Positions 24,025 to 57,794 of a stretch of 64,000 nucleotides of DNA are shown piece after piece. A program made the translations under genes and the position numbers. Position 1 is the first letter of the stretch, and every line of letters begins with the position of its first letter. The notes beneath the pieces are model-generated. The model was given only the letters and a program-made list of their open reading frames with translations. It did no database searches and was not told the DNA's origin. Where the stretch lies: IMG/VR virus record IMGVR_UViG_3300043399_000877, positions 124,001-188,000 of that record. One strand, written 5' to 3'.

Positions 24025-24459
24025 ATGAAAAAGATAATATGCAGTGGTGCCTTATTTTATGCACTAGATACTAACCGTTTTTTATTTTTACATAGGTCAC
24101 GAGGAAAACGTGCTGACCTTTGGGGCTTAGTGGGTGGAACCAACGAAGAAAGTGAAACTCCCTGGGATGGCTTGTGCCGAGAAATAACTGAAGAAATTGG
24201 TTCAATTCCTAAAATTAAAAAAACAATACCATTAGAAACATTTGTAAGTAATGACGACCATTTTAGTTTCCATACATATTTGTGCATAGTTGATAATGAG
24301 TTTTTACCAAAACTAAACGAAGAGCATGATGGGTATTGTTGGGTTACTTTTGGAAAGTGGCCCAAACCATTACATTCGGGCCTACAAAATACACTGAAAA
24401 GTCGTACTAATATTAAAAAATTAGAAACTGTAATTAAATTAATAAATTTAATTATCTAA
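24025..24459 (+). CDS. NUDIX hydrolase
   Basis: WGLVGGTNEESETPWDGLCREITEEIG Nudix box; LNEEHDGYCW. Confidence 0.9.
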   Translation: MKKIICSGALFYALDTNRFLFLHRSRGKRADLWGLVGGTNEESETPWDGLCREITEEIGSIPKIKKTIPLETFVSNDDHFSFHTYLCIVDNEFLPKLNEEHDGYCWVTFGKWPKPLHSGLQNTLKSRTNIKKLETVIKLINLII

Positions 24460-27400
24460 TTTTCTAAAATGATAGTCACCGTCGTGCTCGACTCGGCTAA
24501 AGTTTGACACCAACTCATAACCTATAGAGCGCATGTATTCGATTACCTCTTCTACTTTTGGTGCACCCTCATTATAATCAGTGTGCTGTGCTTCAAGTAT
24601 TATGTCTTTGCAATTGCTCAGTGTATATTCTGCGCCACGAAGCACATCCAACTCAGATCCTTGAATATCTAATTTTACCAAATCCGGCAGCGGCCAATTG
24701 TTGTATTTTACAACAGTGTCAAGAGTCCAGGCTGTTTTCATAACAACGTCATTTTCATCAAATCGTCCAGTGGTTTCTTTATAATAGGAATTACCGCCCG
24801 GTTCCCAAATATGTTGATAAAATTTTAATTCCTTTCCATCTTGATCCGAAAGTAATCCAATATAATAACTGTCTTGTGATTTTTCAAAATAAGGACGGCA
24901 TTCTTCCATAGCATCAAACAGGTAGTAATTTGAATCCGGCCAAACAGTCTTAGCATGCCGTGTCCAATGCAATACGCATGCACCTATGTCATATATTACC
25001 TTTGGTTTTATACCCATTGATCCCATAATTTTTAAATATCGACGATGATCTTCAGGCAAGCGATCTTCATGATATGCCATTTCTAATATTTGCTTTTGTT
25101 CCGCATATGGGTCTGGTTGTTGTAGAACCGGCTGTGGTTCCGGAAGTTCAACGGTATTTTTTACCAAAAACTTAGTTGCGCCGATGTGCTCGCATTTAAT
25201 CGATGGGTCTACCCAAACACTAAATCCGTTTTCCCTTGCTTTTCTGCAAAAATATATATCTTCAGAGATAGTATGACTGTGGTCAAGTGCAGAAGTGTAT
25301 ACAAAGTGTGGATATTCAAGTTTCCTAAAAACCTCCCCTTTTATTAAACAACACCCAAAACCACAACTTGCAATTTCAGTTATTTCTTTATTGTGCAATT
25401 CTTCATATGGTATGTTTGTAACACCACCAAACCCAGTATCTTTGTACACTTCGAGAACATGCAGGCCGGGAACACGCTGTATATATAAACCAGAAATTAT
25501 ATCTCGATCTGCATCTAGCATTTTTTTAAGTGTGTCTGCTGGCAATACTATGTCGCTATCAACACTAAACAGATAATCATACCTTTTTGCCCATTCAGCT
25601 ATTAGGTTTCTTATTTGATCTATTTGATAACCATAGAAAAATTGAAACTCAGTGGTATATCCTTCGGGTATTTCTAAATCATATATTGATTTAAAAGTTT
25701 CAGTCTCAATGTATTTGTTGGTAGGAACTGCTATAAGTATTTTTTTCATTTCTTTTCTTTGTACAATATTTTCAGAAAACGACGGAAGTAACTCATAATT
25801 TAATGTAGATGGGTCTTCCCATATTGTTGATTGTCTTATCCAACATATGGCAGGAGTGGGATCTGCTATCGCCAGAGGAACTGATGATTCCGTATCGCCC
25901 GGTTGATTAACTCTCATAAAATAAAAATTATCAATAGCTCGAGTTACACCGTTTTTATCAATCTCCGTTAATAAACTTTCGCATGTTCGCCATGTCAACG
26001 CATATGCGTGGGCGCCACTGTGCCTCGGAACATCAACAACTCGCGCAGGTGGGCCAGCTCGGGTGTAATCGTAAATACCGATATTTTTAAATTTATATCC
26101 AAGTGCTACTATTCTGTTATCCGGTATGGGTATGTCTACAGGATGCAACATTAGAGAATCGTGTTCAAGTACTATTGCGGTTTCACGATTTTCTAAAATA
26201 CGACGCCAAATTGCAAAATGGCTGGCTGTGGCACATGCAGCAATGTCATTTACATCTCCATTTATGGGTAAACCTGCAAATGCTTCTGCGGCAGTTTTGC
26301 CTTCTATTCCTTCAAAATATTCCCAAGCTAAACCAACACGCTCGCACGACTCGGCAGCAGCTTTTGCATATTCTATTGAATTTGAGTTTGACGTTCTTAA
26401 TATATATGCTTTGGAAGGTACATTACTGTTTTTATAACTCATATCTGCGTTACGATTTTGCTCTTCCCCGCGTACTTTGTAATCATTTAATGGATTTGCA
26501 TCATTATAGTAACACACTATTTCCTGATTGCAATATATTTTTTCCGGTTCCACTTGTTCTATTAACTCATAAAACAATGGATTATCGTGACCGGATCGCA
26601 TCCAATCACCACTGGGGTTTTTAAACTTATTCCAATTAACTGCTTTTATATATCTTCCCAATACTGTTCTCAAATGAGTATAGGGTATGCGCCAATTAAA
26701 CCAATGTGACCTGTAACTTTTATTCTTTTTAACCATGCTTGGGTACTCTTGAGCTATTAACGGTATATTGTCTATGACACTCCACATGCTACCGTATGTA
26801 AACTCATATCCCTGATTGTACAGGTCGTTATAATAATGAAATATTGTATTATTGTTGGCTAACCAATCATCCCCGTCGAGTAGAATTACAATGTCATCTT
26901 CGTTTACATATTCCTCGACTGCCGTTAATTGATTGTATATTGCGCCTTGATTTTGGATATTATCGATAACTTTAAATTTATCAGCGATACCGGGAGGCAA
27001 GCTGTTTATAGTTTTGACAGCTTCCGAATGTGAGTTGTCAGTCGAAGCATCATTAATTATAATATGGAGATAGTTATCATAATCCTGCTGTGCAACTGAA
27101 AGAATGTTTTTTCTAACATAACTCCCTGCGTTCCAGAATGGACTTACGACTACTATTCTTCGTTGTTTGCCATACGATCTGTACTGACGTTTAGCCGGAA
27201 AGTTGAGAACCCTACCAAAAACACCAGCAACTTTTTCGTTTATGCGAGACACTTTATGATATTCATCTACTGGTAAAAATTCACCACTTACACCATATAA
27301 AAATTGTTTCCATTGTAGCGCAACAGTATCCCATCCGGCTACATCTCGCACAACGTTGCAATAATTTTGCTTTTGCTGGAGTAAGTATCGATTATTGTAA

Positions 27401-28440
27401 GCACTTATTACTAGTTCAACAAATCTGTCTACCTGTGCGGCATTATCAATATGTGGAAATAAACCGTTTGGCTCGATCGCGTAGTCTAACAAGTAACAGG
27501 CTTGTTCGACAGCAGTTTCCTCTAATGCCCCAAATCGTGTTGTAATTACCGGTGTATTGTAAAGCAACGATTCAAGGCTGCTTATTCCAAAAGTTTCGGG
27601 AAAACTTCCGGGATAAATTGTAAAACTTGCATTGGCTAATATGCGAGCTATTTCATATTGAGGTATTACACCGGTAAATGTTACATCTAACTCTTTTAGA
27701 TCCGGTCGATCTGCAAGCTGAGAGACTACAACTTCTTGGCTATCTGGTTCAGCATTTTCTCTAAAACGATAAAAACCACCTATGATAGTTAAATGTGCAT
27801 CAGGTATTTGTTGTTTAACACGAGGCCATATTTGATTTACAAGCGGCAGCATACCCTTACTCATGCTCGCATTAAACACAAAGTGGTTTGGGTCTTTCAG
27901 AGATAGGTCCACTTCCGGTATGTGTTGGACTGCGCCGTTTCGTGTTTGGAATACAAAACGCTTTAGTACTTCAAAGTTACGCTTTTTACCATGATCACAG
28001 TTAAGGAAGTAGTCTGTGTGAAAGTCACTCAATGTAAACACATGATCAATGGTCCCGTTAAGCAACAGGTCTTCTACTATTTGGTCACCTTCGATAAAAG
28101 TATCATGCAACCAAAGTATTCGCTTTCCACAGTTTTGCACAAACGGGTGGGTATTGTGTTCAGACATTAACGGAATCACAGATCTTGAAGAAATAGCAAA
28201 ATCATATGTTTCTGTGTGGGCATGTGCATCACTGTTGTCAATATAACGTACTCCGTCATACACTCCGGGTCCAGAGTGTGTGGAGTCTCTACAATTGTTA
28301 AAAACCGTAACATCAAAACCCAACTGTGCAAGGTTTTTGGATATTAGTATTACTGCACTTTCGCTACCGCCTAGCCCGCGGCGTTCTAAGGTAGTCCCAT
28401 CATAGCAGAGACCCAGTTTGTCTATTATAACTATTCGCAT
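24448..28440 (-). CDS. Five-domain glycan-modifying enzyme: GT4-like + GT2 + GT25-like + GT2-like + FkbM-type methyltransferase
   Basis: GLGGSE, LWLHD and ETFGISSLESL (GT-B); VVSPFWNA, IINDASTD and LLDGDDW (GT2); YFEGIEG, CATASH and VLEHDS (GT25); IAVPT, SVDSD, CGFGC and SEDIYFC (GT2-like); YDIGAC and KLDIQGSELDVL (FkbM). Confidence 0.85.
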   Translation of the reverse strand: MRIVIIDKLGLCYDGTTLERRGLGGSESAVILISKNLAQLGFDVTVFNNCRDSTHSGPGVYDGVRYIDNSDAHAHTETYDFAISSRSVIPLMSEHNTHPFVQNCGKRILWLHDTFIEGDQIVEDLLLNGTIDHVFTLSDFHTDYFLNCDHGKKRNFEVLKRFVFQTRNGAVQHIPEVDLSLKDPNHFVFNASMSKGMLPLVNQIWPRVKQQIPDAHLTIIGGFYRFRENAEPDSQEVVVSQLADRPDLKELDVTFTGVIPQYEIARILANASFTIYPGSFPETFGISSLESLLYNTPVITTRFGALEETAVEQACYLLDYAIEPNGLFPHIDNAAQVDRFVELVISAYNNRYLLQQKQNYCNVVRDVAGWDTVALQWKQFLYGVSGEFLPVDEYHKVSRINEKVAGVFGRVLNFPAKRQYRSYGKQRRIVVVSPFWNAGSYVRKNILSVAQQDYDNYLHIIINDASTDNSHSEAVKTINSLPPGIADKFKVIDNIQNQGAIYNQLTAVEEYVNEDDIVILLDGDDWLANNNTIFHYYNDLYNQGYEFTYGSMWSVIDNIPLIAQEYPSMVKKNKSYRSHWFNWRIPYTHLRTVLGRYIKAVNWNKFKNPSGDWMRSGHDNPLFYELIEQVEPEKIYCNQEIVCYYNDANPLNDYKVRGEEQNRNADMSYKNSNVPSKAYILRTSNSNSIEYAKAAAESCERVGLAWEYFEGIEGKTAAEAFAGLPINGDVNDIAACATASHFAIWRRILENRETAIVLEHDSLMLHPVDIPIPDNRIVALGYKFKNIGIYDYTRAGPPARVVDVPRHSGAHAYALTWRTCESLLTEIDKNGVTRAIDNFYFMRVNQPGDTESSVPLAIADPTPAICWIRQSTIWEDPSTLNYELLPSFSENIVQRKEMKKILIAVPTNKYIETETFKSIYDLEIPEGYTTEFQFFYGYQIDQIRNLIAEWAKRYDYLFSVDSDIVLPADTLKKMLDADRDIISGLYIQRVPGLHVLEVYKDTGFGGVTNIPYEELHNKEITEIASCGFGCCLIKGEVFRKLEYPHFVYTSALDHSHTISEDIYFCRKARENGFSVWVDPSIKCEHIGATKFLVKNTVELPEPQPVLQQPDPYAEQKQILEMAYHEDRLPEDHRRYLKIMGSMGIKPKVIYDIGACVLHWTRHAKTVWPDSNYYLFDAMEECRPYFEKSQDSYYIGLLSDQDGKELKFYQHIWEPGGNSYYKETTGRFDENDVVMKTAWTLDTVVKYNNWPLPDLVKLDIQGSELDVLRGAEYTLSNCKDIILEAQHTDYNEGAPKVEEVIEYMRSIGYELVSNFSRVEHDGDYHFRKLDN

Positions 28441-28468
28441 ATATCAACCTATAAAAGCTAATATATTT

Positions 28469-28497
28469 AAATGGCAGGGGATTATTCCCCGCCATTT
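28469..28497 (-). terminator. Bulged hairpin at the fibre 1 stop codon
   Basis: AAATGGC-A-GGGGA / TCCCC-GCCATTT; a late-type TTAAATA motif overlaps its end. Confidence 0.5.
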
Positions 28498-31400
28498 ATG
28501 GTTTTGCGAATTTGTTCCAGTTGTGCAGTCAGTGAGTTGATGGTAATCTGTTGTTCTTTTATGGCTTCAATCAACAGTGGTACCAATCTTTCATACTTGA
28601 TGGTCAAGTAATTCTCACCACTCTTGCTATAAAGATTTCCTTGGGAATCTTCTTTATGATCGAATGGTGCAGGTGCAACCGCTTCGGGCAACACTGCTTG
28701 TACTTCCTGTGCCAGCAATCCAACTTCAACTTTATCTGGATCTACAGCTAACCCAAGCTCAGTTGCTTCAGATTTCCAATTATAGTAAACTCCGTTGATT
28801 TTAGAAAGTTTTTCAACAGCATTGGAAACAACTTGTACATTTTCCTTCAATCTTGCATCCGAGCTGTATGCAGTTATTTCGCCCGCTGCGGTAATTGCAC
28901 CACCAAAAGTTACAGATCCACCGAGTCCGTTAATAATTAGGGTATTAGTGGCACCGTTGTTTCTGGCCATTATTTCATTAGGATCAATACAAACGTTGGC
29001 GGCAGTACTGGGACCTACTTGGAAACCGTGCAACGTGCTAGTAAGATTTACGTCTGCTGTAGCATTGCATCTTAGCCTAGTTATAGTTAGACCGCCAATA
29101 CCAGACAAATTTCCAACTTCAGTGGTACCAGCATACCAAGAAAATTGGCCTGCGCTTGTAGGAACCGAATTCCAAAGAGTATCAGTAGCTATACCTATTG
29201 CATAATCAACCGCTGCTGCACCAACACCCGGATAAAGTACAAGTTTAGTACCCGCACTTCGTGTTGTAAATGCCGGTATAGCTACACCGTTTGTATTCCA
29301 GTCAATTCTATTACCAGTTGTACCGTTTAGATAAATTTGGCCGTTATTGTTGACGGCATCCCATGCATTTGTAGATATAATTTGTGCGCTAAATGTTTTG
29401 TCTGCACTAAACGTCTGCACTGCTGCAAGTGTAGCTATTGTACTAGTCGCATCCGGTAATGTATAAGTTCTAGCCGCAGTCGGTCCAGCAAATGTTACAA
29501 ATTGGTTACCTAGCAGCTCAGTCTTAACGTTTGCAAGCGTCTTTGGTCTGACGAAACCATCTGAACCAGTTTCAACAAAGTAATGTGTTGCAGCGGTCGC
29601 TGTATCTCCAGATCCCGACAAGTTGATGAATGTTGGGTAGAAATATCCACCATAGTTAAGACGTGTCGTGCCGGTCGGCGTCGTGGTACTCGTATCAAAC
29701 TGGCCAGATGTTGCTACAGATCTTATCACAGCCATAGTATTTGGTGCTGCGGTTGTAATATCCGGCACTATAATTGTTGTGTCTGCAGTTGGGGCATTGT
29801 TTAATTCAGTGTAAAAAGTTCCGGCAGAATTATACATTCTGAAATTACCACCGGAAGTAAATACTGCTGTCAATGTCGGTTGAGCACTGGTAGCAGCGGT
29901 CCAAATTTGAAGATCACTACCACCTGCTGTACTTGCGCCCACACCACGCACAAGAGCCAGGTCACCGGATGACTGTGTACTAGCGTCTCTGCTTGCAAAA
30001 ACCACAGCACCAAGTTCAGTACCAGCATTCACTGTAGTACTGTTAAACTCTAACCTTAAACGTGCACCAATAGAACCATTAGCAGACGCCACGTATATAT
30101 CAGTTCCTTGAATAGTATTGACTGGAACTGTTGCGTTGGTAAGTGCAGCACCCATTTTAACTGTACCAGCAACTGTCTGCGCACCGGTTGTAGCGTTCGC
30201 ATACGAAACAGATGTAGTAGAGCATGCGGTAACTGTAAATGTACCATTATAACCGGTTGGTGTGACACCGGCAACAATAATCTGAGACCCGACTTCAAAT
30301 GGTGCTGCGGCTTGTGCTGCAAATGTCAGTGTTGCCGTTGTACCTGTGCCGCTTGCTCCGGTTGTCGCGATAGTAGTTGCCAAAGTTGGCACGGTAAGAA
30401 CGTCACCTGCTGTATATCTGTGACCGCCCCAGGTTAAAGTTACGCCAGTTACTACACCAAGAGCAACCGTTACAGTCGCCAGCGAATAAGAACCTGTTCC
30501 ACCCGACATTATCACGTTCGTGTGTGTGCCGTTCATGTAACCGGTACCACCGGAAGTTATGGCTGCCAATGTTAAAATAGGGCCGGTTACAGCAGATATA
30601 TCTGCACCAACAGCAAGGTTTCCGGGGACAATGGCGCTGGGTGAAAGTAACTTTGTGCTACCACCGTCAGCATCACCAATACTAACGTTAGTTGTTGACC
30701 CTGCCGCGCCGCCGGTGCCGATGTTAACTGTTTTGGTAAATCCGGATGCTGTAGCACCAGTCGCCAAGTTAAGAGTTTGAGAGGTTGTAGCTGCTCTACC
30801 AATTGTTATAGCACCGGTTCCGGACGTTCCGCCAATGTCTATTGTGCCGGAAGTTTGACCTGTTCCGATACTTATTGCTGCTGTTGTGTTATCTGTGAAC
30901 AAAGATGCAGCAGCATTGGTTGCGTTTACTGAAGTTATACCAGTCAAGGCAAGCGCCGCGCTGCCACGGTTGATGGTGACAGATGTTGTACCAATATTCA
31001 TTGTTTGGTTTACAGCAGCCACATCAGTGCCGATTGTAAGTCCTAATGAAGCTCTTGCTGTAGCACCAGTTTCACCAACCCAGTTTGTTCCATTACCTAC
31101 AATAATAGTATTGTCTGCTGGTGTTACTAGTGCAATGTCTGCAAGTCCCGCGTCATATGCTTGAACGTTGGTGCCAATTACGAGGCCAAGAGTCGTGCGT
31201 TGTGCAGCAGCGTCTGCATCATCCAAGATTGCTCGACCAGCAGCAGTCAAAGTAGTCACTGCGTATGTATCAGCCGCAGTCGTATAAATCATACGGTCGG
31301 CAGCAGTAGTCAAACCAGCTATGGACTGAAGACCTGCGTCATATGCTTGAACGTCTACACCAATAGTACCGGTATCTAGAACGCGGGACCAAGTCATTGA

Positions 31401-43001: not shown

Positions 43002-43012
43002 AGGTTAGGGTA

Positions 43013-45669: not shown

Positions 45670-45741
45670 AGATAAATCCCATTAGAATCTGTTGTATTCT
45701 AATGTATTTATCGGAACACTGCTATATATAAAACCTGCTAT

Positions 45742-46479
45742 TTATTCAGGATAACTTGCGATTTCCCTAATTATCCGTTTTCTTGCAAAAAAATTGTTTT
45801 TTATTTCAGATTCGTTTCTTATATAAGATTTTGGAATTAAAAAAATTCCATCATAACGAGACATTTCACCATTTCCAAAAACATGCGGATAGTCAAATGC
45901 GCGTTCGTTTGGTATAAAATCAAACATAAATCCGTCGGCTACGGCGACATTATCTGGAACAGTCCAAAACATTTCAGTTGAGCTTAACGCATAGGCTTGT
46001 TCAACTGTATCAACCGCCGTTGCATGTGGATGAGACTCCAAAAGTTTTTTATAATTTTGGTTTTCTGAACTTCCTATAAAAAATAAATCAAATTTTTCTT
46101 TACCATTATATGCATCAAAAAAACCTGCAATATTTGATTTTCTTTTTGTTTCTGTTACTATACCATCCGTGGGAACTAATACGACTTCTCCCCACGACTT
46201 AACGTTTTGAGTTTCTTTAAAAACTACTGGAAATTCGTACGCAACGTTGAGTTCATTAAGTTTTGGCTTAAGCCAGTATGGAAAGAAATCTTGTAATTTT
46301 ATTCCATTTTTTACTAAAATAACAAACTCAGATTTTCCGTAAAACTCAGTTGCTTGACTATAATCTGATGTATCGTCAACGTACTTTACGGGATTCCTAG
46401 TTAGAAAAGAATTTTTTAAAACGTCAAATCCATTATATATTTTTCCATCAAAACGATTAAATTTTTGTACTGTATTCAT
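45742..46479 (-). CDS. Hypothetical protein, possibly a glycosyltransferase-like fragment
   Basis: Start refined to MNTVQKF at 46479 (overlaps upstream gene end); MFWTVPDN...YPHVF...YDGIFLIPK. Confidence 0.6.
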   Translation of the reverse strand: MNTVQKFNRFDGKIYNGFDVLKNSFLTRNPVKYVDDTSDYSQATEFYGKSEFVILVKNGIKLQDFFPYWLKPKLNELNVAYEFPVVFKETQNVKSWGEVVLVPTDGIVTETKRKSNIAGFFDAYNGKEKFDLFFIGSSENQNYKKLLESHPHATAVDTVEQAYALSSTEMFWTVPDNVAVADGFMFDFIPNERAFDYPHVFGNGEMSRYDGIFLIPKSYIRNESEIKNNFFARKRIIREIASYPE

Positions 46480-47077
46480 TTGTATCATCCAAAAGGTATA
46501 TTTTAGTGCCATAGTGTCCAACATTTTTACTAGCATCAACGTCAACATACACTGTAAAATTATTGTTGTTGGCATTCTCACAAAATACTATATCTTCACC
46601 AACTAGAGTTTCAGTGTAATTGTCCCACCGATTGAAAAACCAGGGACAGTTAATAGCTTTAAAAACACTTGTCTTTATTAAAATGCATCCAAAGCCCACA
46701 GCAAAAACCGGATGTAAACCAGATTGTGAACTTAATCTACTGTTAAAATCAGTTTCATTATCAAACGCAACACTACGCTGTGGTCGTCTTCTAGTGCTGT
46801 ATGTACATCCAACTATATCTTTATTATGTTTTTTTAAATTAAAAAATACATCTGATGGGAAATGCATATCGCTATCCAACCAAAGCGTGTATTCTGAGTC
46901 GTCAGCTATTGCTTTTTTGACCAGCTGATTTCTGCTATCAGCAATTGTAGTACCTATAATCATGTTAAGAGAAAAACTTACATTTTTTCTTGTAAGTTCA
47001 GCTGCGAGGTTTGCCAGACATATGGCAAACCCTGCCGGTATATAATCTTTAGTAGGTATACATATTGAAACTTGCAT
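46457..47077 (-). CDS. GT2-like glycosyltransferase
   Basis: ICIPT, IADSRNQLV, TLWLDSDM (DxD), AVGFGCILIK, GEDIVFC. Confidence 0.8.
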   Translation of the reverse strand: MQVSICIPTKDYIPAGFAICLANLAAELTRKNVSFSLNMIIGTTIADSRNQLVKKAIADDSEYTLWLDSDMHFPSDVFFNLKKHNKDIVGCTYSTRRRPQRSVAFDNETDFNSRLSSQSGLHPVFAVGFGCILIKTSVFKAINCPWFFNRWDNYTETLVGEDIVFCENANNNNFTVYVDVDASKNVGHYGTKIYLLDDTNEYSTKI

Positions 47078-47490: not shown

Positions 47491-47501
47491 ACTAAAAATC
47501 C

Positions 47502-47672: not shown

Positions 47673-47714
47673 GTGTCTTTCTCGTTTCTAGTATGATATT
47701 TAAGCATTGTAGTC

Positions 47715-47741
47715 GGTTAGACCGTTAAAAACGGTCTAACC
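47715..47741. terminator. 12-bp hairpin immediately after the fibre 2 stop
   Basis: GGTTAGACCGTT-AAA-AACGGTCTAACC. Confidence 0.65.
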
Positions 47742-50700
47742 TTATTTTCCTTCTAGCCGATCTACCTTGGCTTTGAGTTCTTTAACAGCTTCAATAAGCA
47801 ACGCAGTTAGTTTTTCGTATTGTACTGTTAAATATTCTTCACCAGTTTTGCTAGTTCCAGTTTCTGGATCTATGTCAAACGGTGCATTTCTTACAGCTTC
47901 CGGTAGTACTTTGAATACTTCCTGTGCTATAACACCGACATCTCGATCTTTTCTTGGAACAAAGTCAAGTGTTTCGGCTTTTTTATGGTCCCAATCAAAA
48001 GTTACACCGCGCAGTGATGTTATTTTATCAAGAGCATTGTCAATGGTAGTTATATTGGTTTTAAGTCTTTCATCCGAACTATAAGCAGTAATTTCACCAA
48101 CTGCACTAAAGTTTCCGGTTGCACCAAACGTTGCTGCAATAGTACCAGCAGTTGTTACGTTAAACGAACCAACAGCACTTGAGAATATACCGGTATCAAC
48201 ATCACGGACTGCGAGTGCTGGTGCCGCCGCTGTTCCGGATCCCTGCAAGTATGTTCTACCAGAAGCAATCCACAATGCCCAGGAATTGGTTATAGTTGTA
48301 GGCAGGACAGCTACAGGTGCTGCATCGATTTTAACGTTTGCAGCAGTGGTTATTGTCATAGTATTAGTGCTAGTAAATGTTGGAGTACGGAATGTAGCGT
48401 GATTTCGTTGGGAAACTGTGCCACCGGCAGCCGTAGTAGTATCAGTAAACGTGCTGTTTGCCACGTTTAGTCTGACACCAGTTGCTGTATTAGTTACACC
48501 ACTGATATTTCCAGTCATATTAACTTGATCAGTAAATGCCACAGTACCGTCAGTTGCCACAGTCATAGGAATTAGCGTACCGGCACTGTCTACTTTAAAT
48601 ACTCTGAGCGTGTTAGTTGGGTCAACATCTATGTTCCAGGTGTTGTTAGTTTGTCCAGTTATTGTGTCCGCTGCACTATTTCCGTAACCAAGAACCAGTT
48701 GTCCACCGTCAGATGATGCAGCTGACCCACCACGTACAACCAGTTGTCCAGTGCCTATTATAACACCAGCCGCAAGTATAGTATTTGCGCCCGGCGGGGT
48801 TGTACCTACGCCCAAGCCGTCCGAACTACCAAACCCAGCGGTTCCACCAACTTGTAAACCACCGCTGAAGAAGTTGGAATTTTCATTTGAAACGTATATA
48901 CCCCAGCGAGACTTCCATTCCCCCTCATACACACCATAATACAAATACCCTTCCCCAGCGTTACCGGGTGCAACTATGTCGCTATCAAGTCTTGTATAAT
49001 CGCCAAATGTAGTTGACAATGTTCCACCGTCAACTTCTATCCAATTATAATTTATATATGACGTTCCAACACTTCCTGCGTCAACATTTATCTTATTGTA
49101 TGTTGAATACAGCGATGTAGTAGTTGATCCGCTTCTTGTATTTTGGCCTATGTTTTGCGATCCAATTACACTTGCTATTGTTCCGGTACCACGGTTAGTT
49201 GCCTCGTTATATCCGCCAATAAAGGTTGTACCAGCTACTGCAACGTCATTTGCGTTACCGGCAAATATTCTGTTGTATCCAGAAAATCCGCTAAGTGTAT
49301 AACTTGTAATTCCGTCGGCACCTAATAGACTTCCTTCAGTTATTGTCACATCGTTTACGATACCGTAATGAATACGGCTTGCCGAAAGAACACCGTCAGT
49401 TGTACTAACTGATGTTACCAAAGATCTTAATGATGTTGTATTAGATGATCCAGATATACTTGCATTTATAATATAATTTGTTGCCGGAAGACTATCTTTA
49501 AGACCAATGTTGCCAACTATATTTGTGTTTCCGTTTGCATCAAAGTATGCAGCCTGTGAACCACCAGTTGTTATCCCGAGTTGGTTAGTACCACTCAGAT
49601 ACATACCTGTAGAAGTATCACCTATAAAACTATATGACGGCGAGGCATTAGTCCCGCTAGATAGTCTTAATTGACCGCTTGTTGTGTTAAATCCAAGCTT
49701 TGTACTTGCCGCCAAGGCTGTTGAATCTACACCGGTGGCTGCAACAAATACTGGGAAACGTAGTCCACCGCTTGTCTCGTCAGTGGCCAATATTGTATCG
49801 CTTGGACCAGCCGTTCCGCCACTACCAGTGTATCCACGTACCCCTTGAATACCTTGACTTCCAGTGTAACCGCGGCTGCCGGTAAATCCAACCCCAGTTA
49901 TACCCTGTATACCTTGTGGACCCACAATGCCTTGAATACCTTGGCTTCCAGTGTAACCGCGGCTGCCGGTAAATCCAGCACCAGATGGTCCTTGGACCCC
50001 TTGGCTACCGGTAAATCCAGTATTTCCTTGATTTCCTTGAATTCCTTGACTACCGGTAAATCCACGACTTCCGGTGAATCCAACACCAGACGATCCTTGA
50101 ATGCCCTGGCTACCGGTAAATCCAGTATTTCCTTGAAATCCCTGAATGCCCTGACTACCAGTAAATCCACGACTTCCGGTAAATCCAGTATCACCAAGGC
50201 CGTCTGTACCTTTTATACCCTGGATACCTTGCATGCCCTGGCTACCGGTAAATCCACGACTTCCGGTAAATCCAGTGTCACCAAATCCGTTACTGCCTTG
50301 AGTACCCTGCGGTCCTTGGCGTCCTTGTATACCTTGACTTCCAGTATATCCACTGCTTCCGGTAAATCCAGTGTCACCAAATCCGTTACTGCCTTGGATA
50401 CCTTGAATACCTTGGCGTCCTTGTATACCTTGGATACCCTGACTTCCAGTAAATCCAGTTAAACCAGCACCATCTTGACCTCGTATACCTTGAATACCTT
50501 GGATACCTTGAATACCTTGGCTACCAGTAAATCCAGTTAAACCAGCACCATCTTGACCTCGTATACCTTGAATACCTTGGATGCCTTGAATACCTTGGCT
50601 ACCAGTAAATCCACGGGTTCCTGTGCCGCTTATACCCTGAATTCCTTGTAGACCTTGAATACCTTGGCTACCGGTAAATCCAGTTGAACCAACGCCATCC

Positions 50701-53700
50701 GGTCCTTGTATACCTTGACCGCCTTGAACGCCTTGTACACCTTGGCTTCCGGTAAATCCACGGATGCTTGCACCGCTTATACCTTGAATACCCTGAATAC
50801 CTTGACTTCCGGTAAATCCGGCACCACGAATACCTTGAATACCTTGAATACCTTGAATACCTTGTGGGCCTTTTATTTGGCCTACGTTATTCCATTGTGT
50901 TCCATCGTAAACCCAAAAATTACCTGTTGCGTCATCTATGACACCGTTTCCGGGTTCAGCTGGATTGCTTATGGTATTGAAATAATAATTCAAATACAGC
51001 GATGGTTGATTTGGTCCGCCTGCCGGGAATACTGCATTTACGTCAGCTGCTGATCCGATTATTAAAAGTGCTGGACCGTAGGTTCCTTGTAGACCTTGAA
51101 CGCCTTGGCTACCGGTAAATCCAGTAGACCCAACAATGCCTTGTATACCTTGACGACCTTGAATACCCTGAATTCCCTGGCTACCAGTAAATCCAGTTCC
51201 TCCAGATTGACCACTGATTCCTTGTAGACCTTGAACGCCTTGACTACCGGTAAATCCATTTTGACCTTGTTGGCCTTGAATACCTTGGCTACCGGTAAAT
51301 CCTCGGCTACCAACAACACCAACGCCATCGGTTCCTCGGATACCTTGAATGCCCTGGGCGCCTTGGCTACCAGTAAATCCAGTTCCTCCAGATTGACCAC
51401 TAATGCCCTGAACACCTTGAATTCCCTGGCTACCGGTAAATCCAATAGGTCCCTGTGAACCTTGAATACCCTGACTTCCGGTAAATCCTCTAGCACCAAC
51501 GGTACCATCTATACCTTGTATACCTTGCAGGCCCTGGTTGCCTTGTACACCTTGGCTACCGGTAAATCCTCGGCCACCAACAGTACCACTAATACCCTGA
51601 ATTCCCTGGAGTCCAGTGGATCCCTGGATACCTTGGCTACCGGTAAATCCTCGGCCACCAACAGTACCACTAATACCCTGAATTCCCTGGAGTCCTTGAA
51701 CGCCTTGGATACCTTGGCTACCAGTAAATCCTCTAGCACCAACAGTACCGTCTATACCTTGTATACCTTGAAGTCCAGTAGATCCCTGGATACCTTGGCT
51801 ACCAGTAAATCCTCTAGCACCAACGGTACCGTCTATACCTTGTATACCTTGCAGGCCCTGAACGCCCTGACTTCCGGTAAATCCTCTAGCACCAATGTTA
51901 CCATCTATACCCTGGATACCTTGAAGGCCCTGGACGCCTTGACTTCCGGTAAACCCACGAGCTCCAGTTAAACCTGTTTCACCCTGGGAACCTTGGACAC
52001 CTTGTCGCCCCTGGATACCTTGAATACCTTGGCTACCGGTAAATCCAGTAGTTCCATTTAATCCAGATATACCCTGAATACCCTGTATACCAATACTTCC
52101 AGTAAATCCGCGGCTACCAACAAAACCTGAATTACCAAGAGATCCTTGAATACCTTGGATACCCTGGCTACCGGTAAAACCAATTACCCCACGAATGCCT
52201 TGAATTCCCTGTGGTCCTTGGATACCCTGAATTCCCTGCGGTCCTTTTATTTGACCTACGTTGTTCCATATGCTGCCATCAAATACCCAAAGATCACCAG
52301 TAGACTGATCTATTACCCCGTTTCCAGTAACTCTGGATGGGAATGTGTCGTTTAAGAAATTATTGGGATTTCCGGTAATATTTACATTTTCAACAGAGCC
52401 TATTACAGTGAGTGATGGTCCGTATGTTCCCTGTACACCCTGTATACCTTGGGATCCTTGGATACCTTGAATGCCCTGACTTCCGGTATATCCAAAAGCA
52501 CCAGCACCACCTTGTATACCTTGAGTACCTTGACTTCCGGTAAAACCTATCGGTCCCTGGCTACCGGTGTATCCTAGGCCACCTATTGGACCACTTATAC
52601 CTTGGATACCTTGGATACCTTGGCTACCAGTATATCCGCGACTACCAACAAAACCAGTATTACCTATTTCACCAGTTAGACCCTGGACCCCTTGAATACC
52701 CTGACTACCGGTAAATCCTGTTAAACCACGAACACCTTGAATACCTTGACTACCGGTAAATCCAACGCTTCCGGTAAATCCGCGTATACCTTGGACACCC
52801 TGACTACCGGTAAATCCAACGCTACCTACGTAACCTAAATCTCCACGATCACCTTTGGTTCCTTGTGGACCTTGAATACCTTGCGCGCCGACAAATCCGC
52901 TAATACCCTGAACACCTTGGATACCTTGGATACCATCAACGCCTTGTATTCCTTGAATACCCTGTGGTCCTATGCTACCAGTATATCCACGACTACCCAC
53001 AAATCCGTCAATGCCCTGGAGTCCTTGCACCCCTTGGAATCCCATAGGTCCTTGAATACCCTGGGCACCTTGTAAACCTTGAACCCCCTGACTACCGGTA
53101 AAACCTGTAGATCCACTTATACCTTGTAAACCTTGTAGGCCTTGTGGTCCAATTGTTCCTTGAACTCCATCTTGACCTGCAAGACCTTGCTGACCGGTTG
53201 TTCCTTGAGCCCCAACAGTTCCCTGAAGACCGTTAGCACCTTGTAGACCCTGTTGTCCCACTGTGCCCTGAGCACCGGTTGTTCCTTGTGCGCCGTTGGC
53301 TCCTTGGACACCCCGGCTTCCGGTAAATCCAGTTATACCTGTAGTACCCTGAGCACCATTGGATCCTTGAATACCCTGTGGGCCTTGTGGTCCAACTATC
53401 TGACCCACGTTTTCCCATGAGCTTCCATTGTATACCCAAAAATCGCCAGTAGCAGAATCTATTACACCATTTCCAGCTACTGCTGCTGGAAAATAATAAT
53501 TAAGCAGGCCTTGTGGGTCGTTTGGTCCACCTGTCGGATAAACAGCATTAACATTGGCTACTGAACCTTCGATAGTTAACGCGGGTCCATAGGTACCTTG
53601 AAGACCTTGAGTACCTTGGCTGCCAGTATAACCCATACTACCAATGAATCCAGTTTGACCGACAATTCCTTGGGGTCCTTGAATGCCTTGAATGCCTTGC

Positions 53701-54077
53701 AATCCCTGTGGACCTTGTGGGCCTTGCAAGCCCTGATACCCTTGCAAACCTTGTGTTCCTTGGGAACCCTGCAGACCCTGTGGGCCTTGAATTCCCTGCA
53801 GACCTTGCTCACCGGTAGCACCTTGTATACCTTGACTTCCCTGAGCACCTTGTAGGCCGCGCTGCCCTTGAATACCCTGAATACCTTGAGGACCCTGGAG
53901 TCCCGGAGTCCAATAGCGTCGTCCGTCAGTATCACCAGTTAGGTAATACCCGTTATCCTCTGGTAAGCCAAGATTTGGTTCAGCCTCACCGGGACGCATG
54001 AACTCATATCGCTTATCACTTATTTCACCAGGCGGTATAGTCTTTACTTTTTTAGATATAGGATATTTGTCACTCAT
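47742..54077 (-). CDS. Giant segmented collagen-like tail fibre (fibre 2) with C-terminal S74 chaperone
   Basis: 2111 aa; Gly-X-Y blocks separated by three homologous globular domains; C-terminal GEITAYSSDERLKTNI...YEKLTALLIEAVKEL. Confidence 0.9.
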   Translation of the reverse strand: MSDKYPISKKVKTIPPGEISDKRYEFMRPGEAEPNLGLPEDNGYYLTGDTDGRRYWTPGLQGPQGIQGIQGQRGLQGAQGSQGIQGATGEQGLQGIQGPQGLQGSQGTQGLQGYQGLQGPQGPQGLQGIQGIQGPQGIVGQTGFIGSMGYTGSQGTQGLQGTYGPALTIEGSVANVNAVYPTGGPNDPQGLLNYYFPAAVAGNGVIDSATGDFWVYNGSSWENVGQIVGPQGPQGIQGSNGAQGTTGITGFTGSRGVQGANGAQGTTGAQGTVGQQGLQGANGLQGTVGAQGTTGQQGLAGQDGVQGTIGPQGLQGLQGISGSTGFTGSQGVQGLQGAQGIQGPMGFQGVQGLQGIDGFVGSRGYTGSIGPQGIQGIQGVDGIQGIQGVQGISGFVGAQGIQGPQGTKGDRGDLGYVGSVGFTGSQGVQGIRGFTGSVGFTGSQGIQGVRGLTGFTGSQGIQGVQGLTGEIGNTGFVGSRGYTGSQGIQGIQGISGPIGGLGYTGSQGPIGFTGSQGTQGIQGGAGAFGYTGSQGIQGIQGSQGIQGVQGTYGPSLTVIGSVENVNITGNPNNFLNDTFPSRVTGNGVIDQSTGDLWVFDGSIWNNVGQIKGPQGIQGIQGPQGIQGIRGVIGFTGSQGIQGIQGSLGNSGFVGSRGFTGSIGIQGIQGISGLNGTTGFTGSQGIQGIQGRQGVQGSQGETGLTGARGFTGSQGVQGLQGIQGIDGNIGARGFTGSQGVQGLQGIQGIDGTVGARGFTGSQGIQGSTGLQGIQGIDGTVGARGFTGSQGIQGVQGLQGIQGISGTVGGRGFTGSQGIQGSTGLQGIQGISGTVGGRGFTGSQGVQGNQGLQGIQGIDGTVGARGFTGSQGIQGSQGPIGFTGSQGIQGVQGISGQSGGTGFTGSQGAQGIQGIRGTDGVGVVGSRGFTGSQGIQGQQGQNGFTGSQGVQGLQGISGQSGGTGFTGSQGIQGIQGRQGIQGIVGSTGFTGSQGVQGLQGTYGPALLIIGSAADVNAVFPAGGPNQPSLYLNYYFNTISNPAEPGNGVIDDATGNFWVYDGTQWNNVGQIKGPQGIQGIQGIQGIRGAGFTGSQGIQGIQGISGASIRGFTGSQGVQGVQGGQGIQGPDGVGSTGFTGSQGIQGLQGIQGISGTGTRGFTGSQGIQGIQGIQGIRGQDGAGLTGFTGSQGIQGIQGIQGIRGQDGAGLTGFTGSQGIQGIQGRQGIQGIQGSNGFGDTGFTGSSGYTGSQGIQGRQGPQGTQGSNGFGDTGFTGSRGFTGSQGMQGIQGIKGTDGLGDTGFTGSRGFTGSQGIQGFQGNTGFTGSQGIQGSSGVGFTGSRGFTGSQGIQGNQGNTGFTGSQGVQGPSGAGFTGSRGYTGSQGIQGIVGPQGIQGITGVGFTGSRGYTGSQGIQGVRGYTGSGGTAGPSDTILATDETSGGLRFPVFVAATGVDSTALAASTKLGFNTTSGQLRLSSGTNASPSYSFIGDTSTGMYLSGTNQLGITTGGSQAAYFDANGNTNIVGNIGLKDSLPATNYIINASISGSSNTTSLRSLVTSVSTTDGVLSASRIHYGIVNDVTITEGSLLGADGITSYTLSGFSGYNRIFAGNANDVAVAGTTFIGGYNEATNRGTGTIASVIGSQNIGQNTRSGSTTTSLYSTYNKINVDAGSVGTSYINYNWIEVDGGTLSTTFGDYTRLDSDIVAPGNAGEGYLYYGVYEGEWKSRWGIYVSNENSNFFSGGLQVGGTAGFGSSDGLGVGTTPPGANTILAAGVIIGTGQLVVRGGSAASSDGGQLVLGYGNSAADTITGQTNNTWNIDVDPTNTLRVFKVDSAGTLIPMTVATDGTVAFTDQVNMTGNISGVTNTATGVRLNVANSTFTDTTTAAGGTVSQRNHATFRTPTFTSTNTMTITTAANVKIDAAPVAVLPTTITNSWALWIASGRTYLQGSGTAAAPALAVRDVDTGIFSSAVGSFNVTTAGTIAATFGATGNFSAVGEITAYSSDERLKTNITTIDNALDKITSLRGVTFDWDHKKAETLDFVPRKDRDVGVIAQEVFKVLPEAVRNAPFDIDPETGTSKTGEEYLTVQYEKLTALLIEAVKELKAKVDRLEGK

Positions 54078-54127
54078 TTTTGTTCCATTATAGCCGATTT
54101 ACTATTATTTATCAATATCGACTATAA

Positions 54128-54916
54128 TTAAAACCCCAAGTGTTTACTTCTCACAAAGTTTAAATCCCAGGTAGTATATGAAATAGGAATTGCAGAACCA
54201 GAGAAGGGTTCTGGATTTGGGTTAACTAAACGCCATCCTTCTCCCCATTTTTTAGTAAGATACTCAATATTCATGTTATTTGCTATATCAAGCCTAGGTT
54301 TCAAGTCTGGTTCACTTTTTTCAGTTTGACTTCCATGTTCATAATATTGATTTTTATCTGCAGGACCGTGCAAATAAGATGCATTTGTGCCAATCCATCT
54401 TTTTATAGGACGATAATGAAATCTCATCAAATAATCTGCGTCTTCACAATATGCAGGATATGTATTTTCGTCAAATAATCCAAATTCAGAAACTATAATA
54501 TCACGAATCATAAACAAATCCCAAGCACCTATATTAAAATCTCCGGGATTTGGGTGGATCATTCCAATATAAGGATCTGACTCAGCTATTTCCACCATCT
54601 CTTTTAACAACCCTGGTCCAAATGCGACATCATCATTTACTATGATCCAGTAAGGTGCATTCATATAACATTTGATTATTAAATTCCAGGCGCCAGCACA
54701 TCCTATGTTGGCTGGCATATGGACAACTTTAATTTTATCAATATAGCGATGTGTTATTTTTGTTAAAGCATTTAATTCTTCGTCGATTTCTCCACGACCG
54801 TTGTTGTTTATAATAACAAAGTTTTCTACTGGATAATCAACACTCATAATTAATCTTGTTACCCAGAACGGATTTGACACTATTGCAGCACCAATAACTG
54901 GAATTTTATTCATCAA
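54128..54916 (-). CDS. GT2-like glycosyltransferase
   Basis: VIINNNG, NIGCAGAWN, IVNDDV (DxD-like), FGLFDEN.YPAYCEDADY. Confidence 0.8.
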   Translation of the reverse strand: MMNKIPVIGAAIVSNPFWVTRLIMSVDYPVENFVIINNNGRGEIDEELNALTKITHRYIDKIKVVHMPANIGCAGAWNLIIKCYMNAPYWIIVNDDVAFGPGLLKEMVEIAESDPYIGMIHPNPGDFNIGAWDLFMIRDIIVSEFGLFDENTYPAYCEDADYLMRFHYRPIKRWIGTNASYLHGPADKNQYYEHGSQTEKSEPDLKPRLDIANNMNIEYLTKKWGEGWRLVNPNPEPFSGSAIPISYTTWDLNFVRSKHLGF

Positions 54917-56748
54917 CGATCTCCGAGCATATAACTTTCAGCTTTTTTAATTTTGTTGTTAACTGTTTTTATTTTTTCTATAACAGATTTTTTTATCAAA
55001 GACGGATTTACGTACCAATCTTCGTATGCGCGATATTCGTCAGGTGCTATATTGTCAACAACCAATTCATATCCCTTGCTTTTTAAGTATTCACGAGATA
55101 GTTCTCTAATTTTACTATTCTTATCCGTGTATGCGTCATGTTCAAAAGTTATAACACCGAACGAATATTCATCAAATGGTATACTTAAAAGAACGTTATA
55201 TGAAACTTCTGGAGGATCACAATCTATTTGTAGGTAATCTATATTTTTCTTGAATTTGTGATTTTTTAGCAGAGTCTTATAATCGACTTCAGTTGCATCT
55301 GCATGTACACAAGGATTTAACCGACTAGTCGAATATGCATTTGCAAAATCTAGATTTAAGTCTATCGATACACCAGTCCATCCAAAACTATTTTCTAGCA
55401 AGTAAGTATTATTACCGTATTGTGGATTTCCAGCACCTATCTCAAGATAAGTTCCAAATTGCTTTCCATCATGGGCAGCTAACACAAACATATCTTGATA
55501 TGACTCAGAATAGTTTTTTTCTATATTTTCTGAATTTTTAAATTTAAAATTTAGTTTTGCATGTTTTTTTGCTGTATAACTTTCAATTTTCTTAGTTACA
55601 AACGCATTTAAATAATTTAAATTATTATAAGTCAACGTAGTAAATTGCTCGTTCATTTCATAGTTAACATAAAGATCTAAAAATATATTTTTAGATTCTT
55701 CTTGAAGTCCGCACCACCAGGCAGTGTGTGCCTTTTGGAACAACAATGCATACTTTCCCGGAAAATCCACAGTTGATCTCAATGGTTCTAGGTTGTCAAA
55801 TTCACAAACATCAACAGCAATTGATGCAGTTGTATAAGAATCAAACCAACGGCCATCGGTGTTGTGCTGGCTTTCATAAAACAAACTCAAGTAAAAATAA
55901 GCTTCGGGCCGTTTCGGAAGTAGTGCAACTGCGTGTTGTAAAAATCCTTTTACAGTAAATTTTCTAGTACCCTGAGATTCAAAACACCTTGCACATTGAA
56001 TAAGGCATTCGTATTGTAGGAGTTTATTTTCAGTTCTTTCAGCTGTTCTAATGTAATATGAAACTGCGCTTGCTGTTTGTCCTATATTATGATAATATCG
56101 CGCAAGCAAGTAATTATTTTCAGGATCATTTGGACTTAAAACATAATTTTTTATAAGATTTTCCACCTTAATTCCAGTTAACCAATTATAAAAACTCTGG
56201 ACAGAAATTAGATTTAACCATTCATTTCTGTTTTTATCAAAGTTTTCGTAAGTTATTTCGAGATCTGTTTTTAAGAGTTCTTGATTTCCACTAGTAATAA
56301 CGCTGCAACCATAATCAGTATCTACTGTAAAAATTTCAAGATCATTTCTTGTTTTTCTAAAATGAACTAATGATTTCCAACAATCACCATTCCAAGTTCC
56401 CCCAGTAAACGGTATTACTTGGTGCTCTTCTTTTGCTGGATTCATGTCATGGCAAATTATAAATCCTCCTGGATTAAGAACTGCCAACGAGTTGTCAATA
56501 TCCTTTATAACTTGATCACTATGGTGAAGCCCATCAACAAATATAACATCAAACGTTTCAGTGTTATTTTTAAAAAAATCATCAGATGTTAATGTATGTG
56601 TAGCTAGTGATAAAGGTTCTGGATCTACGCCAATTTTGTACTCACATTGTATTTGAGAAAAATTCGATCCGTCTGAAACTCCAATTTCTAAATACTTTTT
56701 TGCAGAAATTCTTTTGATAATTTCATTTATAATTTTAGTTCTATTCAT
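54913..56748 (-). CDS. Class I SAM methyltransferase + TPR + FkbM-like methyltransferase fusion
   Basis: YLEIGV, FDVIFVDGLH, GGFIICHD; TPR-like YLLARYY..A..YY and PKRPEAYFYL; SESYQD, YLEIGAG, YLQIDCD, VITFEHD. Confidence 0.8.
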   Translation of the reverse strand: MNRTKIINEIIKRISAKKYLEIGVSDGSNFSQIQCEYKIGVDPEPLSLATHTLTSDDFFKNNTETFDVIFVDGLHHSDQVIKDIDNSLAVLNPGGFIICHDMNPAKEEHQVIPFTGGTWNGDCWKSLVHFRKTRNDLEIFTVDTDYGCSVITSGNQELLKTDLEITYENFDKNRNEWLNLISVQSFYNWLTGIKVENLIKNYVLSPNDPENNYLLARYYHNIGQTASAVSYYIRTAERTENKLLQYECLIQCARCFESQGTRKFTVKGFLQHAVALLPKRPEAYFYLSLFYESQHNTDGRWFDSYTTASIAVDVCEFDNLEPLRSTVDFPGKYALLFQKAHTAWWCGLQEESKNIFLDLYVNYEMNEQFTTLTYNNLNYLNAFVTKKIESYTAKKHAKLNFKFKNSENIEKNYSESYQDMFVLAAHDGKQFGTYLEIGAGNPQYGNNTYLLENSFGWTGVSIDLNLDFANAYSTSRLNPCVHADATEVDYKTLLKNHKFKKNIDYLQIDCDPPEVSYNVLLSIPFDEYSFGVITFEHDAYTDKNSKIRELSREYLKSKGYELVVDNIAPDEYRAYEDWYVNPSLIKKSVIEKIKTVNNKIKKAESYMLGDR

Positions 56749-57794
56749 TATACTTTGTGATCCGCTATAAATTCTTCAAGTAAGTTTTTGGGCATACGCA
56801 ACACATATGAAGCGTTGTCTTGAAACCCGAAAGTTATAAGAACATCATTGTTCCAATAGCACATGCCAACAGCAAACTCGACGTGGCCGTTCATTAAAGA
56901 AAAGTCTTTAGTTATATGGACTAAATTCCAGTTTTTGTCCCATACAACAAACCTATGACGATAGACTGCATCTTTTCTACCAACTTCACTGGTAAAAAGA
57001 TCAACTTCGTGAGTTAATGCAAGGTAGTGCTCGCCCCACGAAATGACTTGTGACCCACCGCGCAAGTCTGCACCAAGTGGATAATGTTGTGTTAGGTGTG
57101 TAGTAACTGATGCGGGACTGGTTGTACTTGCTTGCACTACTTCAGTAGGATTGCTCCATTTAACATACGTAAATGGTGTATCTAATACTGGCATCCAATT
57201 TTTTTCACAATAAGAATTTTTGTCTTTGGGTGGTTCTATCCGGTGGCGCCATACTTCACGGACTGCTGATTCGGTAACTTCTAATTTTGAAAGTTCCATT
57301 CTGCCTTGACCGTGCGTAGTAGTATCTCGTCTAACTCCGGTTATATATAATTCACCATTCCAGCGAACTAACCTCGCGTCTTCTAATCCTACAAAATCCC
57401 ATAACGGTTCATAAGTGTCAAATCCACTTGTGTCAATTAAGTTATATCTTTCTATTTCAAGATTGTCGTTTAATTCACAGTACCAGTTAAGTGTACGCAA
57501 ATGCATATCATTTTCTGGATGAAGGTAAGTTAACGGACCCCATTGATGTTGAAATAATTTTTTTTCTGAATGATAAAATGTGTAATTTACGTGACGTATT
57601 ATCACAACAAGCTTTCCATTATCATTTAATATGGAAGGGTTCATCAACCCGGTTCCATTTGTTTTTTCGGCAGGCAATATTAATGGATGTATACTTCCGC
57701 CGTTCTCTAACGAATATTTGCTAAGGCTGAAATCGTTATCAAAATTGTAATGTTGTTCAATTTCAGTTGATGTTTTTTTAGGTCCTAAGTTCAT
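56748..57794 (-). CDS. Five-bladed beta-propeller glycoside hydrolase/phosphorylase-like protein (GH130/43-like)
   Basis: MNPSI, GLEDARL, EKNWMP, LRGGSQ, VEFAVG, ITFGFQD motifs; ATG 57794 has a GGGGA SD (ORF track start 57824 is less likely). Confidence 0.65.
   Translation of the reverse strand: MNLGPKKTSTEIEQHYNFDNDFSLSKYSLENGGSIHPLILPAEKTNGTGLMNPSILNDNGKLVVIIRHVNYTFYHSEKKLFQHQWGPLTYLHPENDMHLRTLNWYCELNDNLEIERYNLIDTSGFDTYEPLWDFVGLEDARLVRWNGELYITGVRRDTTTHGQGRMELSKLEVTESAVREVWRHRIEPPKDKNSYCEKNWMPVLDTPFTYVKWSNPTEVVQASTTSPASVTTHLTQHYPLGADLRGGSQVISWGEHYLALTHEVDLFTSEVGRKDAVYRHRFVVWDKNWNLVHITKDFSLMNGHVEFAVGMCYWNNDVLITFGFQDNASYVLRMPKNLLEEFIADHKV

Follow-up and report, generated by a model that had tools for sequence, protein, structure and literature searches.

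Does a phage glycosylate its own tail fibres? This question is raised by the window analysed here, i.e., the 64,000 nucleotides (nt) at positions 124,001 to 188,000 of the IMG/VR virus record IMGVR_UViG_3300043399_000877, where glycosyltransferase genes are interleaved with genes for long collagen-like fibres bearing a repeated G[FY]TGS motif. A first-pass annotation had proposed that this motif is a glycosylation sequon and that the enzymes build a glycan coat on the fibres. The analysis leads to the conclusions that: (i) the fibre module contains real, soluble and catalytically conserved glycan-building enzymes, as judged from their sequences; (ii) far outside this genome too, genes of the main glycosyltransferase family are linked with those of G[FY]TGS collagens; (iii) a phage enzyme set that would glycosylate the fibre proteins is a plausible system, with a probability of about 0.5; (iv) it is doubtful that the motif itself is the acceptor site.

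The largest enzyme (1,330 amino acids (aa); 24448..28440, minus strand) begins 42 nt past the end of fibre 1, directly downstream of it as announced, and five domains are distinguished in it. These are, on the minus strand: (i) a GT4 domain of GT-B type (27241..28440; Glycos_transf_1, 43.4 and 36.8 bits vs. cut-offs of 27 and 26.4), with E282 and E290 of the EX7E motif invariant in 52 homologues; (ii) a GT2 domain of GT-A type (26446..27183; Glycos_transf_2, 57.7 bits vs. a cut-off of 23.3), with D522-G-D524-D525 invariant in 55 homologues; (iii) a GT25-like insertion (25771..26442), missing from most relatives; (iv) an A197/Anp1-like GT-A domain (25147..25749) with an invariant D961-x-D963; (v) a methyltransferase of the FkbM family (24451..25053; Methyltransf_21, 52.1 bits vs. 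22.7, and TIGR01444, 48.3 bits vs. 37.7). The EX7E, DGDD and domain 4 DxD motifs are invariant in 30-55 homologues that are 45-72% identical. Domain 3 alone obtains 18.2 bits with Glyco_transf_25, below the cut-off of 24; its 28%-identical homologue, a gene of its own in another locus (L012:7367-8062), obtains 63.9 bits, and a three-sequence profile of the domain retrieves the GT25 structure 8xc8 at E=1.7e-3 and also touches Mimivirus R655.

Further enzymes are found around fibre 2, which had been described as flanked on both sides by GT2-like genes. This is correct for the 262-aa glycosyltransferase (54128..54916, minus strand; Glycos_transf_2, 32.7 bits), whose start overlaps the stop codon of the preceding gene. 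It is not for the 206-aa protein on the other side (46457..47077, minus strand), a standalone A197/Anp1-like GT-A with a DSD motif, paralogous to domain 4 and having no Pfam GT2 match. The protein of 611 aa (54913..56748, minus strand) is composed, as first described, of a class I methyltransferase, a TPR domain and an FkbM-like methyltransferase, the label of this C-terminal half coming from atlas look-alikes only. The next protein (358 aa; 56748..57824, minus strand) models as a five-bladed beta-propeller of GH130/GT108 type, with a predicted local distance difference test (pLDDT) score of 76 and a predicted template modelling (TM) score of 0.81. Its top Foldseek matches (4udg, 1vkd, 6q4z and 5b0p; E ~1e-8, TM 0.5-0.6) are GH130 beta-mannoside phosphorylases and Leishmania GDP-mannose-dependent mannosyltransferases, and with Pfam Glyco_hydro_130 it obtains 14.1 bits, below the cut-off of 26. 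The propeller had thus been recognized correctly, while "hydrolase" is not its sole reading and perhaps not the best one, since the modelled fold spans phosphorylases, mannosyltransferases and hydrolases. Lastly, gene 913..1677 (minus strand) encodes 254 aa in which a cytidylyl/adenylyltransferase-like domain of RfaE domain II type is joined to a mannose-6-phosphate-isomerase cupin; it is likely a sugar-activation step.

The set amounts to at least six glycosyltransferase-type domains (propeller counted), three methyltransferase domains and a likely sugar-nucleotide enzyme. A coat either methylated or pyruvylated had been suggested: with three FkbM or class I methyltransferase domains a methylated glycan is plausible, and no pyruvyltransferase is found to sustain the other half of that suggestion. 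No enzyme has a transmembrane helix (no 19-residue window is hydrophobic enough), and no Pfam family of a flippase, polymerase, lipid-carrier transferase, ligase or initiating phosphoglycosyl transferase is present in the block or in the related islands.

Glycosyltransferases of phages, including multi-enzyme sets, are also cited in PMC12619734 as glycosylating DNA bases, and hypermodification of the phage DNA against restriction would be another use of such genes. This is very improbable here: the Pfam hits of the proteins encoded between 24.4 and 63.5 kb include no DNA alpha- or beta-glucosyltransferase family, i.e., no match of T4 type; the neighbours are late structural genes rather than genes of nucleotide metabolism; and the company of sugar-type FkbM methyltransferases, of a mannoside-type propeller and of a TPR domain suits the assembly of glycans on a protein or on a glycan.

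What would the acceptor be? Fibre 1 (28482..37385, minus strand) is a collagen-like protein of 2,967 aa with 64 G[FY]TGS copies and a globular domain; fibre 2 (47742..54077, minus strand; 2,111 aa) has 49 copies and 5 G[FY][VI]GS variants. A third protein had been counted among those with dozens of copies; this small collagen-like protein (468 aa; 37796..39202, minus strand), which has a Gly_rich_2 domain, contains only 4, all GYTGS. Fibres 1 and 2 have 442 and 374 in-phase GXY triplets, respectively (Pfam Collagen, PF01391, E=2.7e-23). The longest run of fibre 1 comprises 1,197 uninterrupted residues (aa 588-1784), i.e., about 340 nm if triple-helical. Both large fibres end with a Peptidase_S74 intramolecular chaperone (Pfam E=5.1e-16 and 1.1e-18), and SDARLK and SDERLK, presumably the Ser...Lys cleavage motif of this domain, are present in the fibre sequences. 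The S74 chaperone is a trimerising domain, and the collagen may form a trimeric triple helix. The globular domain of fibre 1 (aa ~350-590) is common to annotated tail fibres of marine and freshwater phages. In addition, the collagen is broken by a globular insert of about 55-70 aa (...G.G.VID..TG..WV..G..W.NVGQI.GPQG), three times in fibre 2 (aa ~163-228, 551-611 and 999-1068) and once in fibre 1 (aa ~203-255); similar inserts are seen in the collagen fibres of two other loci (L036 and L044).

The motif is far more frequent than the composition of the fibres would give. When triplets are shuffled within the GXY runs (5,000 trials), fibre 1 yields a mean of 12.4 copies and a maximum of 24 vs. 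64 observed, and fibre 2 a mean of 10.5 and a maximum of 21 vs. 49 observed. In fibre 1, GS follows every G[FY]T and the spacing of the motif in the main helix is 15-30 residues, with a mode of 21. At the Y positions of this fibre Gln is used in 67% of cases, Pro never and Lys in 2 out of 442, and 64 of the 75 Thr belong to the motif. At the DNA level, the 64 copies of fibre 1 correspond to 30 distinct 15-nt sequences and the 49 copies of fibre 2 to 21: third positions vary freely and Ser is encoded by both AGY and TCN, the residues being constant. The DNA repeats themselves are degenerate (66-94% matches, mixed periods). This variety of codons and the degeneracy of the repeats argue that the motif is kept by selection and does not result from recent duplication. 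The number and order of the repeats of fibre 1 are given without independent confirmation, as contigs assembled independently from the source sample are exact matches and are fragmented into pieces of 178-379 bp within the repeats (32180-35165), where their summed depth is 1-3 times that of the flanks. Among six cultured phages (Synechococcus S-CAM9, Pelagibacter Mosig, Roseobacter CRP-603, Ralstonia RP12, Atu_ph07 and Bacillus Gamma), five are without the motif and one contains it once; a full-text literature search on the motif strings returned no phage or collagen paper.

The link between enzyme and motif was evaluated on two samples of viral contigs drawn by DNA patterns, GFTGSQG for motif-rich collagens and a generic GxQGxQGxQG for the others, habitats of which may differ. 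The large glycosyltransferase is present in 18 of 74 motif-rich loci vs. 4 of 91 motif-free loci (odds ratio 7, p=3e-4) and, once near-identical loci are merged, in 15 of 64 vs. 4 of 89 (p=8e-4), both statistics ignoring kinship. The propeller/TPR-FkbM cassette has the opposite tendency (1/74 vs. 9/91). Taken from the side of the enzyme, a motif collagen gene is found in 32 of 73 other loci of the large glycosyltransferase, at less than 150 nt in 17 of them (both orientations occur, 14 being divergent), whereas 79 tail-sheath loci from related phages contain no collagen gene at all. A co-occurrence such as had been put forward as a check is observed at the level of these loci, with the restriction that most motif loci lack an adjacent glycosyltransferase.

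The relatives of the enzyme are numerous, i.e., at least 1,519 metagenome protein clusters contain the GT4-GT2 core, on contigs of up to 370 kb, none being informatively named. In cultured phages the closest match of the large glycosyltransferase is 25% identical over one quarter of its length, and a protein search against cultured viruses gives only weak or partial matches, led by pieces resembling domain 4 that are 34-40% identical and come from cyanophages and from an archaeal virus. The domain architecture varies by fusion and fission among relatives, and the five-domain form is found only in this phage. In three loci (L389-L391; large glycosyltransferase 67% identical), the enzymes that are scattered over three places of the window form one contiguous block, in the order: fibre (144 GFTGS), small collagens, chaperone, large glycosyltransferase, FkbM, propeller, GT17, methyltransferase, TPR-FkbM, GT2, nucleotidyltransferase/isomerase fusion, gp13. 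The fusion, which is there the last island gene before the neck gene gp13, is 51% identical to gene 913-1677, located 23 kb from the enzymes in the window. Elsewhere (L198) propeller and TPR-FkbM part make up a single fused protein of 739 aa. Such contiguity and fusion support one functional unit that includes gene 913-1677.

The closest large relative, a contig of 370 kb (L392/L393), has a glycosyltransferase 68% identical and a sugar island of about 22 kb, with a DegT aminotransferase, two epimerases/dehydratases, a GT17 and a sulfotransferase as well. The counterparts of the window's enzymes there flank a fibre of 1,174 aa that is not a collagen, having NNNFFG...NT[TS]G repeats and many N-x-T/S triplets. 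In another locus (L021), a PfkB kinase and an epimerase adjoin the glycosyltransferase.

Is the motif then the glycosylation site? It may instead be a structural element of this class of collagens, the enzymes modifying something else: the combination of an aromatic residue with a Ser at the following X might keep the triple helix stable or in register, or serve for the binding of a partner. In 864 collagen runs of other phages, with 5,335 motif copies, Ser occupies the X after the aromatic one in 97% of cases vs. only 71% for Thr at Y, which is otherwise mostly replaced by Val, Ser, Ala or Ile; the conserved core is [FY]-x-G-S. In bacterial collagens Thr is the residue most used at Y, glycosylated or not, and it stabilises the helix by hydration (PMC8968730). 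Moreover, phage collagen genes often carry the motif where no glycosyltransferase is near: this is the case of most motif-bearing collagen loci, and for 45 of those lacking this family, the 25 commonest Pfam families among 120 open reading frames of the neighbourhood include no glycosyltransferase. The enzymes, for their part, also accompany motif-free collagens and the non-collagen fibre described above, and some glycosyltransferase loci have no fibre-like collagen within 10 kb. Several of these observations (the replaceable Thr, the motif loci devoid of glycosyltransferase, the non-collagen fibre and the loci without collagen) also weigh against glycosylation of the fibres as such, as do two features of the case made for it: the association test ignores shared ancestry, on samples perhaps from different habitats, and the fibre is proposed as the acceptor from sequence and genetic linkage. 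The sequon of the first-pass annotation comes out weakened by the 71% of Thr, the many motif loci devoid of glycosyltransferase and the presence of the same island at a non-collagen fibre. A purely structural role is nevertheless rated as somewhat unlikely, for the glycosyltransferase family is seven-fold enriched beside motif-rich collagens and the most conserved position is a hydroxyl residue (Ser), with which an acceptor role is still compatible. If the motif is an acceptor, Ser would be no worse a candidate than Thr. There is also a likeness between G[FY]TGS and G-[FY]-[ST]-G, the site at which EGF repeats carry O-GlcNAc.

The main rival explanation retains the enzymes as glycan builders and moves their target to the host: they would remodel envelope glycans (O-chain of the lipopolysaccharide (LPS), capsule or S-layer glycan) during infection, so that superinfection is blocked or progeny is kept from sticking to debris, and their position among fibre genes would only reflect a hypervariable insertion hot spot. 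A study of pelagimyophages placed glycosyltransferases in a tail-fibre "host recognition cluster" read as modifying the O-chain (PMC7029224), a further argument against the fibre as target. The content and position of the island vary, and the aminotransferase, epimerase and sulfotransferase genes added in relatives are typical of surface-polysaccharide clusters. In the window itself, the three-gene cassette of propeller, methyltransferase-TPR and GT2 separates fibre 2 from the gene of a 117-aa protein (57855..58208, minus strand) as if inserted into a conserved pair, homologues of this small gene directly preceding fibre genes in 11 other loci. This explanation remains unlikely when set against the composition of the island, which has no membrane protein, flippase, polymerase, ligase or initiating phosphoglycosyl transferase, against its packing among late structural genes, against an association specific to one sequence class of collagens, and against the TPR domain, which suggests a protein partner.

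Glycosylation of the fibres by the phage could proceed as follows. Soluble phage enzymes would build a short, methyl-capped oligosaccharide directly on the fibre proteins in the host cytoplasm, before or during trimerisation of the fibres. In such a scheme the TPR domain would serve to grip the protein substrate and the large enzyme would function as an assembly line, as A064R of PBCV-1. The supply of sugars may include a nucleotide sugar of mannose or heptose type, because of the nucleotidyltransferase/isomerase fusion, the mannoside-type propeller and the PfkB kinase and epimerase of L021.

To our knowledge, glycosylation of virions by virus-encoded enzymes is established only for giant viruses and mycobacteriophages. 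The closest system in working principle is A064R of PBCV-1, a GT-GT-methyltransferase protein that makes the capsid glycan and caps it by its terminal methyltransferase (PMC7826918); A064R and A111/114R have, like the enzyme described here, several glycosyltransferase domains in one viral polypeptide. The putative system described here differs by a bacterial host, other domain families and a proposed target that is a collagen-like fibre instead of the major capsid protein. Mimivirus L230, a collagen glycosyltransferase of GT25-like type, hydroxylates Lys and glucosylates hydroxylysine (PMC9614988). There too a virus encodes collagen-like proteins, along with the GT25-related enzyme that glycosylates them, and domain 3 is GT25-like, with a score below the family cut-off, whereas the fibres here are nearly devoid of Lys (2 of the 442 Y positions in fibre 1) and the window contains no hydroxylase. 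Exosporium collagens of BclA type (Bacillus, Clostridioides) have Thr-rich stalks with short O-glycans, some of them methylated, and a glycosyltransferase gene near the collagen gene (PMC12357932); they differ by GPT-type repeats lacking the aromatic-Ser motif, by cellular enzymes and by being spore hairs and not virion fibres. In mycobacteriophages, phage glycosyltransferases decorate capsid and tail-tube subunits at their C-terminal ends (Freeman et al. 2023, as cited in PMC12619734); as far as that citation goes, one or two enzymes are used and the targets are neither collagens nor fibres. Lastly, among aquatic T4-like phages, pelagimyophages and cyanomyophages have glycosyltransferase and sugar-nucleotide genes (including rfaE-like ones) interleaved with tail-fibre genes (PMC7029224), the host O-chain being the target favoured in that study, which reports neither the five-domain family nor the collagen link nor the motif. 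A paper on large aquatic "moraphages" mentions glycosyltransferases and does not mention collagen, and the literature searched contains no paper on this glycosyltransferase family, on the motif or on a link between phage collagen fibres and glycosyltransferases.

If the fibres are glycosylated, virion glycosylation would extend to a very large group of uncultured aquatic phages with no close isolate relative, and this would be the first O-glycosylated collagen in a phage. A candidate acceptor motif would be available, testable with peptides such as (GPIGFTGSQGVQ)n, and the annotation of glycosyltransferases in "host recognition clusters", now read as modifiers of the host LPS, would change. 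The consequences would also concern host recognition by the fibres, their resistance to proteases and the avoidance of mutual sticking.

Other collagens of aquatic phages are accompanied by other enzymes. A propeller/TPR-FkbM cassette lacking the large glycosyltransferase adjoins long, motif-free collagens of Gln type in eight loci (L198 among them). In Synechococcus phage S-CAM9 (L394; record positions 15011-39388), the fibre gene that follows the homologue of the 117-aa gene is a Lys/Gln/GPT-type collagen with no G[FY]TGS, and several 2-oxoglutarate (2OG)-Fe(II) oxygenase genes flank the fibre genes, which hints at a different collagen modification, i.e., hydroxylation, in cyanophages. One may go further and speculate on a matching code between the chemistry of collagen fibres and modification cassettes in aquatic phages: [FY]-x-G-S with GT4-GT2, Gln-type with propeller-TPR-FkbM, and Lys-rich with 2OG-Fe(II) oxygenases. 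O-glycosylation by GT4-GT2 would then lead to bottle-brush rods of glycocollagen about 340 nm long. Such a code is distinctly unlikely; were it real, post-translational modification of collagen would be a widespread phage trait shaping host recognition.

The region studied is the tail-fibre module of a freshwater jumbo myovirus of about 382 kb, the window matching bases 124,004-188,003 of an IMG/VR contig of 381,886 bp. T4-like myovirus genes are present (UvsX-like recombinase, gp32-like single-stranded-DNA-binding protein, large terminase, tail tube, tail sheath and gp15); the sheath has 1,105 aa, and tube and sheath are 43-49% identical to those of the jumbo phages Atu_ph07, Phosso and PA5oct. 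The DNA itself is present in the runs of a single freshwater metagenome and, as partial matches, in samples from aquaculture and from an estuary environment, and DNA searches give no match in cultured phages for the window or for the glycosyltransferase gene. All genes from 24.4 to 63.5 kb share the minus strand and are packed like an operon, 0-50 nt apart and in some cases with overlapping stop and start codons. The T4 late-promoter motif TATAAATA occurs no more often than by chance (6 seen vs. 6.7 expected), scans for sigma-70 promoters and terminators stay at background level, and no public RNA run contains the window DNA.

Several neighbouring genes complete this picture. A Phage_tail_APC tail assembly chaperone (37437..37796, minus strand) lies directly upstream of fibre 1, and in L389 its homologue directly precedes the glycosyltransferase. 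A NUDIX hydrolase (24025..24459, plus strand) is convergent with the five-domain enzyme, with an overlap of 12 nt at the 3' end of the latter; the arrangement is the same in L392/L393, where the homologue is 80% identical and NUDIX-gp15 follows the glycosyltransferase. It is uncertain whether this hydrolase belongs to the enzyme system; nucleotide sugars are a possible substrate. A protein of about 245 aa with no assigned function (45742..46479, minus strand), encoded downstream of the standalone GT-A, has a listed GTG start at 46581 that overlaps the GT-A gene; its structure model (pLDDT 37) was not used, and an atlas hint of a GT-A fold is a lead only. The long plus-strand open reading frame 32097-35207 was rejected as an antisense shadow of the repeat. 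In the 11 loci with a homologue of the 117-aa protein, the fibre gene follows within about 5 nt and starts with the N-terminal domain that is also found in fibre 2 and in gene 39225-39896. When one genome per bacterial species was scanned for the GT4-GT2 core, the single match was a contig of 2.9 kb (L388) in a Luminiphilus metagenome-assembled genome, which is probably binned phage DNA and gives no more than a weak hint on the host group. Finally, a protein with a TnsA-like endonuclease N-terminal domain (13729-14172, minus strand; E=4e-20), possibly a homing-type endonuclease, is located among tail and packaging genes.

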